A DNA stretch of 63,179 bases, counting the filler, from Reticulomyxa filosa (lineage: Eukaryota > Protista > Foraminifera): NCBI GenBank assembly GCA_000512085.1. It is 13 parts of 13 records of this genome, joined end to end, with 100 filler letters (N's around TTAATTAATTAA, not from the genome) between each part and the next. Parts side by side here need not be neighbours in the genome. Positions count along the whole stretch, not along the records: positions 46,589 to 61,564 come from ASPP01003886.1; 12 more parts are not named here. The stretch is one strand, 5' to 3'. Below the pieces are notes generated by a model. The model was not told the origin of the DNA, did no database searches, and saw nothing but the letters and a program-made list of their open reading frames with translations. Shown in pieces: positions 51,615-61,564 of this stretch. The translations under genes were made by a program, and so were the position numbers. Position 1 is the stretch's first letter. Each line of letters opens with the position of its first letter.

Positions 51615-54121
51615 TTATTCTTCCATCCAATCTTCATCGTTATCATCATCACCGTCAGCTTCGTCCATGACAAACTCTCTGTATTTGTCCAAGCTTTTCT
51701 TCAAAACGTTTTGCATATCTTCAGGTTGCACTGACGGCCTTCTGGCTTCGGTGGGGTCCACAACTTTTAAAGTATTGCTTTTGTTGAACCCACGGATTCC
51801 AGCCAGCAAATTGTTGCGTGGACTTGCAGAGTTTACGCTTAATTTATTATTGTTACTTGGAGGCACTTTTGGTGCAAGACCGGTTGGTGGAGGTTTCGGC
51901 ACGTTCGTCTGCGACATCTGTGGAGAATCATCCGTCAATTTAGGCGGAGGGGGTATGAAAGCACCCGTTTTCGGGAGAACGGATGTCGAATTTGCTGATG
52001 TGTATTTTTTATTTGTTTTAAAGTTGTAATTGTTAAGGATCAGCTGTTTGTGTGTTGAATCTTTGAGATGTGATTAAATGCATTTTTTTACAAGTATTAC
52101 AAAAAAAAAAAACACACACATAATACATTTGGTTAGCTCCGCTCTCGGTGGTGGCCTACTAGGAGGCGGTTCAGGGTAATCATTCATAGAAACACTCTTT
52201 TGAATTAAGCCACTGTCACGCGGAGGTAGACGGCCGGATATTGGCGGCGGAGGAGGTTGAGACGAAGAAGAAGATGATGAAGAGAAAGGAGGAGGATGAG
52301 ATGGGGGCGGAGGTTGTGATTGATATTGTGTCTGATATTGTGAGACAGCTTTCGCAGACACATGCGTTGAAGTGTGTTGACTTTGGCCCGAATTTGATGA
52401 TGATGCAAAAGATGATGAATTCCCATCATGGGCAATCTCTTTTTCAATTGAATACGTCTGCACAAACCCTCGAGGCAAAATTGTACCTTCTTCTCTGGCC
52501 TTGCGCCACTCTTGGATTTGCTTTGATGTTTTATTATTTTAATGAATTTAAAAAAAAAAAATAATATAATAATGTTCAAAAAAAAAAAAAAACTTTAATG
52601 ATGTCGGGATCTTTGATATGCATTTGTTCCTCTTTTCCCTCGGGCGAAGTTTCTTTTTTCTGAAGACGCAGCATCAGATCGATGGGATTGGTGGGATGCA
52701 AGTTGTGCTCTTCTTCGTCGATGGCCGACTCGATGGCTGACGTCCACGAGTCCACTTGCTTTTTGGACTTGCAGAAGAATGTGATAAATCCCCATTCCGC
52801 GGATTCGGGCACAAATTTTTTGTTTTGCGTAATGATGGCAAAGCGATGCTCCCCGTCGACAATGTTCGCCTTTGCCGGCAGCGGCGTGTCATACACCACA
52901 CGTAGCTCAAACGTCGGCAGCACCGACAACACCTTCCCGCCCTTCTTCGGCAACGTGGTCAGAATCACCAAGTCATTGCACAATATCACAAACCCTTCCT
53001 TGTCTTTCGTTCCTTGTCCTTCCAAGTAGCGAATGTTCGAAGTCCGATATACCATTCGATGGGGTTTCGCCAAGTCAACTTTGTTCTTGAACAGTTTTCT
53101 TTGCAGTTCTCCGCAAAGCTTAACAAAAAGGATAAACATATACACATATATACATGTATGTATATATGTATATATGTTTATTATGTAATATTTAAAAAAA
53201 ATGTGTTGTTTACCATTCTAGATTTTTTTTCTTTACTTTTGGTAGCGACTTGATCGATCATTTTTTTCATAAAGTCAACGGCTTCCAATAAACTTTCACC
53301 CGAGCTCCCGCCGCCTTCGTGTATAATGGCGGTATACAAGTCCGCGAGTAGCTGCAGATAGGTGGGCAATCGCTTAATGGGCTCTTCCAAGTACGATTGC
53401 AAAGAGCGTCCACACAGCTCTTCGCTCACTTCTAAAAAGTCAACCAATTTCTTGTTCTTCTTTTTCAGCGCTTCCAACGCACCCACTCCCGCTTTCACAT
53501 TGTCAATGTACTCACTGTACAGCTTCAAAAAATGCCCAAATCGCTTCATTTGTGCTCCAATCCCATCTCTTATCGCTGGCAATCCGCCTTTGATCCCTTT
53601 TTAAGTTGTTTTGTTTTATTGCACTTGCGTTCAGTCTCTTTATATATATATATATATGTATATATGTACATATATATATATGCATATGTATATGCACGTA
53701 TATGTATGTATATATGTGACATGCATGGACACATGCCTAATTTGATCAAATCATCCAAAAAAGTTTGATTGGCATCACCAATCGTTTGGAATCCTCCGAA
53801 AATGGTAAAAATATCGCTCTCTGAGAGGATCGAGTGATTGCGCTTTGCCATGATGGCCAGTCGATGCTGAAAGTGGTGATACCCATTCTTCAGGTTTTCC
53901 ACGTAACGTCGCTCACTGTCATAAAACGCAAATATGGCTTCTTCCATTGTCACTTTTCGCTCTTTTGCAACTGGCTTGTTTGTGCTTTCGCTGTTCTCTG
54001 ATTCCGTACTTGATGGGATTGCCTTTTCTTCATCTTGCTGTTGCGGCTTTGCTCTTGGGGGCGCTTTTGTCGGGTTTGGAGGTAGACTAGGTGGGGGAGG
54101 AGGTGCAGAATATTCACTCAT
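51615..54121 (-). CDS. DH-PH RhoGEF with proline-rich region and C-terminal WH2-central-acidic (VCA-like) module, 5 exons
   Basis: DH: FYDSERRYVENLK...IFTIFGG...FLKLYSEYIDN...SLQSYLEEPIKRLPTYLQLL. PH: FVILCNDLVIL...FFCKSKKQVDSWTSAI. Tail: NNLLAGIRGFNKSNTLKVV..DMQNVLKKSLDKYREFV..DDDNDEDWMEE. Exons join in frame. Confidence 0.88.
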
Positions 54122-54516
54122 GTTTTAGTACTGTTTTTTTTTTTAGGTGGGCTTACTTTTTTTTAAAAACCAAACACACTAGTGATCTCGTCTGTCGAAG
54201 TTTCATTTTTAGTTTAAAACGATAGAATTGTAATAAACAATATCAAAAGTAATGAAGAAGAAGTATTTTTACAATCTTTCATATCTCTAAAAATCAATAT
54301 TTCGTCGTTTTTTTTGTGGCAGTATATTTGTTGGGTTTGAAAAGATTTGGTTAATTTAAATGTAATGCAGGAAATACACAAACATTATTGCGTCCGTAAA
54401 TTATCAAATATTCGATTGAGAAAAACGTTAACAGATAATTCAAGTTAAATGAGGCACAATAAATTTGAGCTTTGACAGTTTTGAATTCCTTTACCTTTTT
54501 TAAAAGGAAAAAAAAA

Positions 54517-56087
54517 ATGCACTCTAATCAGTGGTCTGGCATTCAACAGTGTTCTAAAAAGTCTGCAGATTTTTCGAAAAATGTATCATCAGATTCAACA
54601 AGCAAAATTATCATATCTTTGACATCAGATGGTGCATCATGGTTGACAACAGCCTTAACGTCTGAAAAAAAGCCATCAGCAGCACCATCAGCAGGCCCAA
54701 CAGCCCCAAAGCCCGGGTTGTTGCCCCGACCGAGCATTCGCATCACATCAGGGAGACAATGGGTACTGCCAAAAAAGGCAGACAAAGAAGCATACATGAC
54801 GAAAGACCTCGAGCTTTTGAAAATGCCAAACCAGAAACTACATAATCTGAATCATTTGCAACCGGACGAGATGATATTCCAGCCCATGTATTTCGGCATC
54901 GACCCATATTTGGTCGGACGATTATCAGGATATGTTGGCCGCACAGTGCGTTCACAAGCGATTGTGCGCATTATCGCCTCGCGTTGCCACGACTACCAAC
55001 AAGGAGATGTGTTCTGGTCGCGCGATTTCCCGTGGACGACCGCCCACGTGCTCACCAAGTCCAAAGTCGACCGCTGGGTGCAGCTGCGAACTATGCTAAA
55101 GATTTCCTCATCGAAAAAGAAGGAGGAGAGAGAGGAGACCACACAAGAGCCAGACATGTTGTCTCTCTTGTATTTGGGCGCCCTGGGGACCACCGGGCTC
55201 ACCGCTTACTATGGTCTCCTAACCATCGGCTGTCTCAAAGAGGGAGACAAAGTTTTCATTTCTGGTGCCGCAGGTATGTTTTGGCTTTGTACGTGACGCA
55301 TGCATAGATATACATATACGTGTATATATCATGTATTTATATGCATATATACATATACATATACATATATGTATATATAATTAATGATATCATAGGAGCA
55401 ACTGGTTATATTGCAGGACAAATTGCGAAACTAAAGTACAAGAACATATATTTGGCGGGAAGTGCGGGGAGCGATGAGAAGGTGCAGTGGCTGATCAAAG
55501 AACTAAATTTTGACAATGGATTGAATTACAAGCAATTTGGCGAGGACAGGAAGAAGATGCAACAATGTTTACAACAGTTGTTTCCCAACGGGATTGATTT
55601 GTATTTTGATAACACTGGAGGGTTGATCACCGAATGTGTGTGGGACTTGCTAAACTCAAAAGCTCGAGTCGTGGTTTGTGGACAAATTGCACGGTATGAT
55701 AAAATTACACGGTTGAAAAAGACCAAAATCCAATCTTCTTCTTCTTCTTCTTCTGCTACTGCTGCTGCTGATGGTGATAATGATAGTGATTCATCTTCTT
55801 CGATTGGCAAAATCGATGATTTTTTATTCAAACTCATATATAAAGAAATTCGAATTCAAGGGTTTGATGTGGACGATTGCAAAGACTGGACCCCTTTTTA
55901 TCGAGATATGAAAAATTGGATTTCGAAAAAGCAACTCTACACAAAAGAAACGGTCGCACTTGGCTTTGAAAATCTCCCTTCCGCTCTCGAAGGGCTATTT
56001 ACTGGGAAAAACACTGGCAAAATGATTGTCAAGTGCACCGACGCTGATCTCGCCTCTGATCAGTCGTCTCTCAAAAGCAAACTCTAA
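54517..56087 (+). CDS. NADP-dependent alkenal/prostaglandin reductase-like oxidoreductase (MDR family), 2 exons
   Basis: IDPYL; YLGALGTTGLTAYYGLL; VFISGAA|GATGYIAGQIAK; GSAGSDEKV; GIDLYFDNTGG; GLFTGKNTGKMIV. Intron 55274-55395. Confidence 0.92.
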
Positions 56088-56756: not shown

Positions 56757-58374
56757 ATGGGAAATTGTTATCCTGATCGTTCCACGTTATTTCACTCAAA
56801 TGACTCCCCGTCGACCCAACAACAGCACCATAGTGATCAACCTGCAATACTTAACAGTGCTACACAACTCGCTGCCAAAAAGCGAAAAGACGAATTGGCT
56901 GAAAGATTGAGAAACCCAGGACTAACAGTTGACAAGCAAAAGCATGACGGTTCTTTCGAGAGTAATTCACGTAATCGTCCCGAATTTGCCCAAGAAGCAG
57001 TGAAAATAACCAATCAATTTTGGTTGGAACATATTCAAAGTCTTACAGACGAAAAGAAAGCAGTAAAAAAAAAAAAATTTTTTCTCAGCAAGAGCGACAT
57101 TTTTTTTTGTGCGTGTTTATGTCCGTTGTAGCAGCAATAAAATTTTTAAAAAAGAGAAGCATGTTTTTTTTTTGTTTTTGCGTTTTGGAGTTATACGTAT
57201 TTTTTGGGTACCTTTTTGCTGTTTGTCTATTTAAAAAAAAAATGTTCCCCAAAATTATCTAGATAATAGCTGTGACATTGTATGGGCATTTGTTCTGTCG
57301 CTTATCTGATTGCCGACAAATATTTTTGGAACGTGGCAAAGTCGAAGATGTCAGCATTGAGCTGTTGCAAAGTGTTATGTTTTAATTTAAAAAAAGGACT
57401 GAACGGAAGAGAAATATAGGTGATAAAAAAAATTATGTGAATAAATTAAATAAACAATAATCAGATTGGACAATTGCTATCGATTGTATCCAAAAAAAAT
57501 ATCAGCAAAATCCAAATGGATCTGCGAAAGTTAGGGGCAGTGTATTGTGAATTTGGAATAACGGACAAACATTATCACTTGTTTTTACAAGCGTTGCATT
57601 GGACATTTGAAGAGTCAAGTGGCGGTCGCAATGTGTACTCATTACGTATCAAGTTTTGCTTGGAACACATTTTCACCACATCGGCCAAGATCATCACGGG
57701 CAAGGATTTCACTTCTTTATTTGGAGATCGGGTGCTTGATTTCTGGTCCTTGGAGTTTTTGGATTCTTTGGATATCTGTCTTGCCCATCCTACTGGTATT
57801 TTTTATTTTTTATTGTTAAAATTTGCGGATATGGGATACAACATGACTAGTTTTTGTAATTATATTTTATTTTTTTGTGGGAAAAAAAAAAAGGAAGAGA
57901 ATATTTTGATCGTTATTTGGAACAATCGTTTTGTGTTGAATACATGTCGTTTTTGCGTAAGTTTAATGCCTTCAAAGGTCTGTCATCCCATCGAGAGAGA
58001 TATGAAAAAGCTTTGGAAATTTATCGTGCTCATTTATCTTTAAGTGCACAAGAATATATTGAGTTATCCAACCAAGACTACGTTGATCAGGTAGGTTTTT
58101 TTGTTTTTCAGGAAAAAAGGGTTAAAACGAAAGGGACCGAACTGGAAAAATTTACACGAAAAAAAAGCTGAAACATGAACTGGACAATTTTGCCCAATAT
58201 CAATCGAACGGATCAGAAAATGAAACAGATGAATCACCGGTTTATCTAATCAAAAGTACTCTGCTAGATAATGTTTATAACGATGTTGCCAAAATTATTG
58301 AAAAAGACATTTGGCCACAATTTGTGGCCGCTATTCATTCTATTAAGGAGGCCACTCGACCTCAAGTGGTTTAA
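56757..58374 (+). CDS. Globin-RGS fusion protein with N-terminal MGxC lipidation motif, about 383 aa, 5 exons
   Basis: Exons 56757-57062, 57263-57373, 57465-57795, 57894-58090, 58168-58374, all GT-AG and in frame. Globin: FW..LYGHLF..RQIF..LRKLGAVYCEFGITDKHYHLFLQAL. RGS: SLDICLAHPTGREYFDRYLEQSFCVEYMSF..ALEIYRAHL..IEL..IIEKDIWPQF. Confidence 0.82.
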
Positions 58375-59488: not shown

Positions 59489-61564
59489 TTAAACATTGAG
59501 CATCCCCGCAGGGATCATTCGTCTTTTGGCTGGAGGCATTTTTATTGTCAGTGCAGCGTTTGAATTGTTGATTCTTGGTCTTGCTCCACGAATAGGTGTA
59601 TCCATGGCATCAGGACGATTATAACCAAAAAAGCCATTTTTTTTTTTAATGGGTTGTTGTCTATAAAATTTGGTGGTGGTTGAAAATAGATTCTCGTAGT
59701 CGATACTGGATGCTCATCGGCATCATCCACATTTGTTTTCAATTCATTTTCCATTTCTCTTCGCAATCGCTTTTTGTTCATACGCATATTCTTGTCTACA
59801 TTATTCGCTTCCACTGCATATTTATCGGCACCCTTACCAACGTCTTGATTTTCTCTTTTTTTTGGTTTGACTGTTACATTTACCTTTCGGTCGTTTTTTT
59901 CCACGGTTCGATTTTTGGACGCGGTTAGCGCGCGTTTCATGCAATTTTTACAAGAAAAGTTACCCTAATGAACGTTTCAATAAAACAACGCATCTTTTTT
60001 TTTTCCCTCCCCTTTGGCATCTTTTTTTTTTTTAGAAAAAAACTTCTGGGACGTAGGCTGGGCTAAAGGGAAGCCAACAGGACAGATGGATACAATGACC
60101 GCACCAGTTGCAGTATACAGCCTCCCATTCTTTGATCGGATCCTCCTCACGGCATGCCATACACGGCGTCTCACTTCCATCTTCAGAATCAGAATCTCTT
60201 TTTTCTGGTTGGCCCAATATTTCTATTGCACTTGTGTACTGTTCTTCCTTTTTTTTTTTTTGTTAATTAGCAAATAGTTATTTGTTTCCTCCTTTTTTTT
60301 TTAAAAAAAAGAACGGAACAAAAGTTTTGAAATCACGGTAATTTTGCAGAGAACAGGTTTTCAATAGGCCTTTGGACAAGCTCTGTGACAACGAGTAGTT
60401 TGGGTTGGCTTGGAACTTTTCAAGCAGTTCGAGCGTGGTTCGATTAAAGAGCGTGTCGGTGGAATAGACTGGGAAAGGCCAATCGTCTTCGGAGCTGTCT
60501 GAGTCAACGGTTGCGTGATGAGCTGGCCTTGTCAACGAGTCTTTGTGTGGTTTGCATTTTCCAGATTTTTCTTTCTGTTCATTTGCATCCAGCCTTTTCG
60601 TCCCCTTCTTTTCTTTCAGCTTGTTTTTCATCACTGTCACTTGTTGTTGATGCTCATTATCCTTATCCTTATTATTATTCTTATTACTATTACTATCATT
60701 ATTATCCTTATTCTTATCATTGTTATTATCTTTATCATTATTATTATTATTATTGTTATTATTATCATTATTATTCTTATTATTATTATCATTGTTATTC
60801 TTATTAATACTCTTATTCTTATGCATGTGCATATGTGAGTGGGTATGAGTGTGAGTGTGAGTGTGCATAGACGTGGATTGGACTTGGATGGCCTGAGCCT
60901 TTTCTTTGGGCAATTGCTGTCGCATCTGTTGTCTCTGCTGCTTTTTTTTCTCGCGCATTTCGGCGAATTCCTTATACTTTTGCTGCGTGGAATTATCGGT
61001 ATGTTCGGCTTCGACGTCGATGACATCAGCATGCGGCTGAAGATCGAACTGAAATTTTCGAAACAATTTCTCCACGACACTGAAGGCATTTTCATCGTTG
61101 CAACAGCCACCTGCAGGCTTCTTTTCGTCTTCCTCCAGTTTCGTGTGCGCACTGGCGACAGTGCGCTTTTCAATATGGAGTGGCTCCACTTTGCGAGGAC
61201 CGATCAGCAGCGGCAGTGGCGGTGCGTCTTCCACAAGGTCGATGATTTCGGCAGGCGGAGGCAGGCAGAATTTGTTGTTGTCATCACCGTCATCGGTGAT
61301 ATCAAACTGAGCTCTCTTTTCTCCATTGTGTTTACCAACTGCAGTATTACCGGCATTGGCAATCGTCACGTGTTTCGAAGAAGAGGAGAGCGAAGAAGAG
61401 GAAGAAGAAGAAGAAATACATAAGGAAAGTACTCCTTTGTGAGAACGATGTGAAATGGTTGGAACAAATTTGATGTCCTTTTCATCTTCCTTATTATTGT
61501 CAATGTTATTGTTATTTCTATTTCTATTGCTAATGTTATTATTATTACTATTACTATTACTATT
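59489..61564 (-). CDS. PHD-finger protein with long Asn/His-rich low-complexity region, 5'-partial, multi-exon
   Basis: C4HC3 pattern CMAC...YCNWCGHCIHLSC...|FSCKNC across an intron. The 3' end needs a frameshift in the homopolymer near 59640. Confidence 0.65.

Follow-up and report, generated by a model that had tools for sequence, protein, structure and literature searches.

We analysed a window of 63,179 nucleotides (nt) of DNA from the foraminiferan Reticulomyxa filosa. All coordinates count along this whole stretch. The window carries RFI_04280, which is one intact, constrained gene. Its product has an acylation-type start, a linker predicted to be disordered, a modelled 3-on-3 globin fold and a regulator of G-protein signalling (RGS) domain. 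We infer the function of RFI_04280 from sequence and models.

One gene encoding a globin and an RGS domain

A sequence-only reading of this DNA had described five in-frame exons encoding about 383 residues. We rebuilt the gene from the sequence and checked the frames. It occupies positions 56757-58374 of the + strand. The exons (306+111+331+197+207 nt) sum to 1152 nt and encode 383 amino acids (aa), introns 1-4 all have GT..AG borders, and homologues align without gaps. The earlier description was therefore accurate.

To place the gene among known proteins, sequence searches were run exon by exon. Exon 3 found a 100% identical match, P0001, in a representative protein library. This is ETO32836.1 (RFI_04280, UniProt X6P3R6), named solely 'RGS domain-containing protein'. 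The deposited model has 420 aa. Compared with the rebuilt 383 aa it contains three insertions, which are pieces of introns 1, 3 and 4 (57063-57116, 57796-57893 and 58091-58102, giving 18, about 19 and 4 extra residues). In the AlphaFold model, those from introns 1 and 3 fall in low-confidence stretches (P0001 105-108 and 265-283). P0001, comprising the five exons and the intron pieces, represents the whole protein in our analyses. A relative free of intron pieces, P0005, served as the second whole-protein model. Contigs from two public sequencing runs, X1 and X2, were used to examine splicing. The parts of the gene, with the evidence for each, are listed here; pLDDT is the predicted local distance difference test and 3s1i is the structure of Hell's Gate globin I.

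56757..58374, + strand: complete globin-RGS coding region of R. filosa RFI_04280 (frames, GT..AG borders and lengths; exon 3 match to P0001)
56757..57062, + strand: exon 1, 306 nt, 102 codons; MGNC start, low-confidence linker of ~70 residues and globin A helix (..NQFWLEHIQ..) (pLDDT, family alignment)
57063..57262, + strand: intron 1, 200 nt, GT..AG, stops in frame, GC 0.28 (skipped exactly by X1 and X2 contigs)
57263..57373, + strand: exon 2, 111 nt, 37 codons; helices B and C of the globin, CD corner and beginning of E, with Tyr B10, Phe CD1 and Val E7 (alignments)
57374..57464, + strand: intron 2, 91 nt, GT..AG, one stop in frame (skipped exactly by an X2 contig)
57465..57795, + strand: exon 3, 331 nt, 110 codons and 1 nt; helices E-H of the globin, a conserved linker and the first RGS helix (LEFLDSLDICLAHPTG) (alignments)
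57543..57545, + strand: TAT codon, Tyr at the globin proximal-histidine position F8 (alignment to plant haemoglobins, 3s1i and the family)
57796..57893, + strand: intron 3, 98 nt, GT..AG, phase 1 (gapless homologue alignment; low pLDDT of the piece kept in the deposited model)
57894..58090, + strand: exon 4, 197 nt; RGS helices ~2-5 (Pfam RGS PF00615; RGS10 alignment)
58061..58063, + strand: GAG codon, Glu at the conserved RGS asparagine site, RGS4 Asn128 (alignments)
58091..58167, + strand: intron 4, 77 nt, GT..AG (X2 contig running on into exon 5 letters)
58168..58374, + strand: exon 5, 207 nt; family-specific insertion of ~25 residues, final RGS helices (..EKDIWPQFVAAIHSIKEA..) and TAA stop (alignments; P0001 RGS match 282-405)

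Exon 3 is a single open frame that encodes globin helices E-H, the linker and the first RGS helix. Hence, the fusion of globin and RGS domain is independent of any splice call. The junction 57062->57263 is spanned by contigs of both runs, and 57373->57465 by a contig of one. Contigs that lack introns with GT..AG borders are what spliced RNA would yield. An X2 contig match stops at 58090 and its next 30 letters fit the sequence from 58168 onwards at 25 of 30 positions (LKHELDNYVQ versus LKHELDNFAQ). Intron 3 was spanned by no contig of the two runs. At this site LAHPTG, ending exon 3, is joined to REYFDRY of exon 4, which corresponds without a gap to LAHKTGREYF (..LAHKTGREYFERY..) in transcript-derived homologues. 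All four junctions align to such homologues in this way. The proposed splicing was thus reproduced exactly for introns 1 and 2 and supported for intron 4, with intron 3 uncovered. The contigs are 90-95% identical to the gene. Hence, they come from relatives and not from the R. filosa strain sequenced. The GC content of the exons is 0.35-0.42, compared with 0.20-0.32 for the introns.

The contigs also reveal the constraint acting on the gene. In X2, 29 of 31 differing codons are synonymous, and in the globin exons all 17 are. By exon, the synonymous fractions are 5/5 (exon 2), 12/12 (exon 3) and 12/14 (exon 5). In exon 1 the X1 contig has four non-synonymous and three synonymous codon changes, and a 3-nt indel. 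Hence, constraint on the exon 1 linker is weak. We conclude that the globin exons are under strong purifying selection and that the gene is not decaying. The codon for residue F8 could not be read in the contigs, as it is too near a contig end.

The same fused architecture occurs elsewhere. We found about 30 relatives. Every named one is foraminiferan and the others come from metagenome or run assemblies. The named sources are R. filosa (four paralogues), Nonionella stella, Bolivina argentea, Ammonia sp. and Globobulimina turgida. More than 20 homologues have the identical order of globin then RGS domain. In the transcript-derived homologues of Nonionella, Bolivina and Ammonia, both domains lie in one open reading frame (ORF), and several pass both Pfam cut-offs. 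Since many homologues are transcriptome ORFs, both domains are on one transcript in those species. The best matches outside the family are bacterial multi-globin proteins or globins joined to methyl-accepting chemotaxis protein (MCP) domains. So far, the globin-RGS family has been found only in foraminifera. The tree resolves four subfamilies. The R. filosa clade that contains RFI_04280 (96/96) has a clade of marine rotaliids as its sister.

Deposited models of the other R. filosa paralogues (RFI_19592, RFI_29246 and RFI_01537) have similar Phe/Leu-rich hydrophobic insertions, or truncations, in the same places. None of them is annotated as a globin, probably because of such model errors.

Some relatives are longer. 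P0021 (Nonionella stella, 661 aa) and P0017 (Bolivina argentea, 509 aa) have a long N-terminal region, with no Pfam match, before the globin and RGS domains. This region contains several strongly hydrophobic segments, at least four in P0021. Judging by these segments, the subfamily may consist of multi-pass membrane-globin-RGS proteins, reminiscent of seven-transmembrane (7TM) RGS proteins. P0031 (Bolivina argentea, 974 aa) carries about 600 extra Asn/Lys-rich residues, with no Pfam match, C-terminal of the globin-RGS unit.

Domains and key residues

All of the features listed by the sequence-only reading were found. Briefly, these are the MGNC start, the A-helix Trp, LYGHLF of exon 2 (which carries Tyr B10), the CD1 Phe, LRKLGAVYCEFGIT, helices G and H, and the RGS domain. 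Pfam Globin (PF00042) had no match in RFI_04280, either as exon pieces or as P0001. With exon 3 alone, a phmmer search of the PDB gave weak matches (E 0.3-1.7), all seven of them to the F-G region of plant haemoglobins. Because single-exon searches gave no globin signal above threshold, our domain calls are based on the family profile and on folds. A profile of 29 family members matched globins among solved structures at E 8.8e-16, with Hell's Gate globin I (3s1i). In this comparison Tyr29 (B10), Phe43 (CD1) and Gln50 (E7) of 3s1i align exactly. The relatives P0005, P0006, P0009 and P0014 pass both the Globin and the RGS cut-offs of Pfam. Of the two Pfam families named for checking by the earlier reading, RGS is above its cut-off in RFI_04280, and Globin only in relatives.

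The AlphaFold model agrees with the profile. Residues 75-234 of P0001 superpose on 3s1i with Z 15.0 and a root-mean-square deviation of 2.4 A over 131 of 131 residues. Myoglobins match at Z ~13. In Foldseek, the template modelling (TM) score normalised by target is 0.79 for 3s1i, and the helix pattern of P0001 fits a 3-on-3 globin sandwich. The N-terminal half of RFI_04280 is thus modelled as a complete 3-on-3 globin fold, and the possibility that this half is not such a globin found no support. Pfam Globin outscores Protoglobin in every relative compared, and Protoglobin stays under its cut-off. The best solved matches are F-type, animal and plant globins. Hence, the globin is of the F/M type and is not an S-family sensor globin or protoglobin. 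Membership of the S-family globin-coupled sensors was rejected on the same grounds, since Protoglobin is sub-threshold and the best solved match is an F-type single-domain globin.

The sequence-only reading had missed a change at the proximal position. Residue F8 of RFI_04280 is Tyr (in LGAVYCEF) and aligns with His F8 of plant haemoglobins and 3s1i. The proximal His F8, the haem iron ligand of globins, is therefore absent. Phe CD1 and Tyr B10 are kept. Residue E7 is Val, compared with Gln, Thr or Phe in relatives. The adjacent residue F9 is Cys in RFI_04280, Ala in P0002 and His in P0003, and so provides no consistent substitute ligand. Across the family, F8 is His in 25 of 28 members and Tyr only in RFI_04280, RFI_19592 and RFI_29246. 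These three form a subclade (97/96) that does not include the His-bearing RFI_01537. This grouping suggests that a single His-to-Tyr change followed a duplication and was retained through two more. The three paralogues are mutually 59-69% identical (61% in the globin halves and 59% in the RGS halves), and the surroundings of F8 read AVYCE, AFYAE and ELYHS.

The MGNC start had been taken as a signal for dual acylation. A Met-Gly start aligns in nearly all full-length relatives, across subfamilies, and Cys is found at position 3 or 4 throughout the clade of RFI_04280. The N-myristoyltransferase motif usually has Ser/Thr, a small or hydroxyl residue, at position 6. In RFI_04280 this residue is Pro (MGNCYP), leaving the motif imperfect. 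Some relatives (MGNCLSG and MGLCCSG) match it better. Hence, the start and nearby Cys assigned by the sequence-only reading are present and conserved, and Pro at position 6 departs from the N-myristoyltransferase motif. From these alignments, Met-Gly-Asn-Cys is a probable N-terminal acylation motif. We detected no transmembrane segment in the RFI_04280 protein. Disorder is predicted for the first 70-85 residues in the family. Consistent with this, most residues of P0001 1-72 have a pLDDT below 50, and values are high from around residue 75 onwards. A predicted complex of the P0005 globin half, the RGS half and haem scored 0.00, a value that carries no weight either way.

The RGS domain was detected directly. 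Exon 4 alone matched Pfam RGS PF00615 at 30.8 bits (cut-off 23.9, E 4.3e-7, profile positions 12-71). P0001 scored 29.7 bits over profile positions 10-109 (residues 282-405). Exon 5 searched alone against the PDB gave nothing relevant. The family profile matched RGS18 (E 3.6e-14) as well as RGS4 (E 1.1e-9). Foldseek TM scores by target were 0.77-0.83 for P0001 against RGS8, RGS16 and RGS1, and up to 0.86 for P0005. With a globin TM of 0.79 and an RGS TM of ~0.8, structure comparison of P0001 bore out both proposed domains. An all-helical RGS fold is thus present in the RFI_04280 model.

The G-alpha contact surface has changed. We use RGS4 contact numbering (Glu87, Asn88, Asn128, Asp163 and Arg167), that of the RGS4-Gi-alpha1 structure. 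These residues are as reported by Tesmer et al. 1997. The Asn128 site was set by alignment with the conserved Asn of RGS10 and RGS18. In RFI_04280, Asn128 is replaced by Glu, Asn88 by Tyr and Arg167 by Gln, and the Ser85 equivalent is Cys. The equivalents of Glu87 and Asp163 are retained. Hence, RFI_04280 has an incomplete set of the G-alpha contact residues found in RGS proteins that act as GTPase-activating proteins (GAPs). Glu at the Asn128 site is common to the whole clade of RFI_04280, while the other three subfamilies keep Asn. No precedent for this Glu was found in plant or Naegleria RGS proteins. Because of the changes at Asn128 and Asn88, GAP activity cannot be assumed for RFI_04280, and the earlier assignment of its RGS domain as a G-alpha GAP is not supported. 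Judged by these residues, the RGS part may be either a GAP or a mere G-alpha binder, and it might not be a GAP.

Six positions are at least 90% conserved in all subfamilies (P0001 G178, L195, H199, Y212, C259 and Y286). Two of them, a His in helix G of the globin (..LQALH..) and a Cys in the first helix of the RGS domain (..LDxCL..), are not classical functional residues of globins or RGS domains. Such positions may point to an inter-domain relay or an alternative ligand.

Candidate functions

For the family as a whole, we propose the following mechanism. The protein would be tethered at the inner face of the membrane, beside lipid-anchored G-alpha. Its globin domain (Tyr B10, Phe CD1, His F8 and often Gln E7) would bind haem. 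The conserved helical linker would relay the haem ligand or redox state to the RGS domain, and this domain would then set the speed of G-alpha switch-off. For the His-bearing relatives, a gas-sensor role is still reasonable.

RFI_04280 would differ at the haem. Haemoglobin M variants, catalase and haem-transport proteins all use Tyr to bind the haem iron. At the proximal position of haemoglobin M variants Tyr holds the iron ferric, and O2 is not bound. Tyrosinate ligation favours ferric iron, which binds neither O2 nor CO. According to our proposal, the proximal His became Tyr after a duplication within the Reticulomyxa lineage, and the Tyr survived two further duplications. Haem would be held via the tyrosinate ligand, as a ferric centre not binding O2. 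The signal reported by the protein would not be O2 but the availability of haem, the redox state or a small ligand such as NO, and its RGS part would still engage G-alpha. We give about even chances to the claim that RFI_04280 retains haem through tyrosinate as a ferric, non-O2-binding centre that reports other signals to the RGS domain. We favour it over a haem-free globin because Tyr F8 is retained, because Tyr B10, Phe CD1 and the fold are retained, and because selection on the globin exons is strong. Since His F8 has gone, reversible O2 binding is unlikely in RFI_04280.

Several observations weigh against this proposal. Pfam Globin is silent on RFI_04280, and Pro at position 6 makes the acylation motif imperfect. 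The RGS residues that contact G-alpha are changed. The runs from which the contigs derive are only guessed to be RNA. Finally, loss of His F8 could equally signal loss of haem.

A wider version of the proposal is tentative, and we regard it as doubtful when taken in full. In the His-type proteins, G-alpha shut-off would be tied to O2 or NO. The Tyr-F8 subclade would be a natural ferric variant, resembling haemoglobin M and retuned to a different signal (haem, redox state, NO or sulfide, for example). Together they would make up a lineage-specific foraminiferal class of haem sensors acting directly on heterotrimeric G proteins, and the fusion would lend independent Rosetta-stone support to the debated link, reported for neuroglobin, between globins and G-alpha.

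A serious, if unlikely, alternative is that the three Tyr-F8 copies contain a haem-free pseudo-globin. This would be a structural, dimerising or other-ligand module placed before an RGS domain that docks on G-alpha or another partner. The N-domain of Bacillus RsbR, a non-haem globin, would be comparable. Such a module would explain replacement of His F8, and Val at E7 leaves Tyr B10 as the sole polar distal residue. The failure of Pfam Globin to match fits too. Replacement of the RGS catalytic-site Asn agrees with a general shift of function, and purifying selection is expected of any functional fold, with haem or without. However, Tyr has been kept in three diverged paralogues while its flanks change. 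Tyr B10, Phe CD1 and the pocket helices are also retained, and Tyr is a competent haem-iron ligand elsewhere.

The sequence-only reading had proposed a gas or redox sensor acting on G-alpha. Its architecture is real and conserved, but Tyr at F8 speaks against ferrous gas sensing in RFI_04280. We consider it improbable that RFI_04280 itself is a ferrous-haem sensor of O2, CO or NO that switches a G-alpha GAP. The globin-RGS architecture and membrane motif speak for such a sensor. The Tyr B10, Gln E7 and His F8 pocket of the His-bearing relatives is likewise typical of high-affinity, O2/NO-reactive globins. However, ferrous sensing of these gases needs a proximal His. RFI_04280 has Tyr there, with no consistent substitute at F9, and tyrosinate favours ferric iron. 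Glu at the RGS Asn128 site is a further difficulty.

It is very unlikely that the protein is a membrane-tethered enzymatic or protective globin (acting as an NO dioxygenase, as a peroxidase or against reactive oxygen species), in which the RGS domain merely positions it near G-protein complexes. The closest solved relative is indeed a bacterial F-type globin, and globin X is an acylated membrane globin for which a protective role has been proposed (PMC7475203). However, there is no reductase, either as a partner or as a domain. Conservation is as high in the RGS half as in the globin half, and the linker too is strongly conserved, which argues for coupled signalling and not for mere targeting.

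Erroneous joining of two adjacent genes, a pseudogene or chance ORFs has a negligible chance of being correct: the deposited gene model is partly wrong, keeping intron pieces, and intron 3 has no direct read support, but a single frame in exon 3 encodes parts of both domains, three junctions are covered by spliced contigs, nearly all codon changes are synonymous and the homologues share the two-domain order, and on these grounds we rejected two separate genes and a pseudogene.

Known systems, significance and neighbouring genes

The combination found here has near neighbours in several known systems. The closest single match is Hell's Gate globin I of Methylacidiphilum infernorum (3s1i), which is best in both sequence and structure (Z 15.0, TM 0.79-0.88). 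The alignment with it is exact at Tyr B10 and Phe CD1 and, for some family members, at Gln E7. Hell's Gate globin I is a soluble, single-domain, His-ligated protein, whereas RFI_04280 has Tyr F8, Val E7, a lipidation motif and an RGS domain. R4-type RGS proteins (RGS4, RGS8, RGS16 and RGS18, known in G-alpha-i/q complexes) share the fold of the second domain at TM ~0.8, and the residues Glu87 and Asp163. They differ in lacking the insertion of ~25 residues between the later helices and the fused globin, and in the contact residues that are changed in RFI_04280.

Globin-coupled sensors resemble RFI_04280 in having an N-terminal globin followed by a C-terminal output in one polypeptide, with the presumed logic that haem controls output. 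Examples are HemAT, EcDosC/YddV and AfGcHK, and the eukaryotic globin-adenylate cyclase HemAC-Lm of Leishmania. RFI_04280 is unlike these in its RGS output, its F/M-type globin and its lack of His F8. The outputs listed for globin-coupled sensors are MCP, kinase, and diguanylate or adenylate cyclase; RGS is not among them (PMC7475203).

Neuroglobin is a globin reported to be functionally linked to heterotrimeric G-alpha, and neuroglobin structures are among our fold matches. Its ferric form is the active one. Neuroglobin is reported to be a GDI (guanine nucleotide dissociation inhibitor) for G-alpha-i/o (PMC4842972). In contrast to the covalent fusion in foraminifera, it is a separate protein, acts as a GDI and not a GAP, and has no RGS domain.

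Two further groups are comparable at the membrane. Globin X and the acylated nematode globins undergo Gly2 myristoylation and Cys palmitoylation (PMC7475203). As in those proteins, the Met-Gly-x-Cys-type N-terminus of RFI_04280 suggests a membrane tether. Unlike RFI_04280, they are single-domain, hexacoordinate (His/His) globins with no signalling output. The 7TM-RGS proteins include Arabidopsis RGS1 and a Naegleria 7TM-RGS (PMC9283941). They too are membrane-attached, non-animal RGS proteins with a sensor part ahead of the RGS domain. RFI_04280 differs in that it has no transmembrane segment and its sensor module is a globin.

The sequence-only reading knew of no characterised globin-RGS protein. 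Consistent with this, we found no description of the architecture in the literature searched, in which subscription journals were thinly covered, so that a prior description is possible. No paper on foraminiferal globins was found in the same literature. A fold search of a protein atlas returned RGS clusters only, with no globin-RGS cluster, and a protein search of the atlas gave no usable match.

To our knowledge, haem-based globin sensors are well studied in bacteria and rare in eukaryotes, and none is known to feed heterotrimeric G-protein signalling. What is new here is an RGS domain as the output of a globin-coupled protein and, conversely, a globin as the sensor module of an RGS protein. 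The architecture is hidden by current annotation, which retains intron pieces and gives the RGS label alone. Several of the source genera (among Reticulomyxa, Ammonia, Nonionella, Bolivina and Globobulimina) do well in sediments poor in oxygen. The globin-RGS family is a testable candidate for coupling O2, NO or redox state to foraminiferal motility or metabolism. If this were true, sediment protists would gain a molecular route for behaviour in oxygen or nitrate gradients. The Tyr-for-His subclade would be a natural experiment in globin retuning. Regulation of G-alpha by globins is a disputed claim, and the fusion is relevant to it as well.

Other features surround the globin-RGS gene. No tRNA was found in the genome piece that carries it. 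On the - strand, 60278-61369 is a 363-aa ORF with a long Asn/Asp/Lys-rich low-complexity core, a His-Thr repeat and no Pfam match. Also on the - strand, ORF fragments at 52576-54121 match the two halves of a RhoGEF (DH) domain (PF00621, E 1e-11 and 9e-8). An intron with the sequence of a TA/CA-rich simple repeat separates the halves. They belong to a separate multi-exon gene, upstream of the globin-RGS gene and on the opposite strand. On the + strand, two ORF fragments at 54472-56087 match a medium-chain (zinc-type) dehydrogenase/reductase, one its N-terminal and the other its C-terminal domain, with a simple-repeat intron between them. PF16884 is under its cut-off and PF00107 just at its cut-off. 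This dehydrogenase/reductase gene lies directly upstream of the globin-RGS gene.

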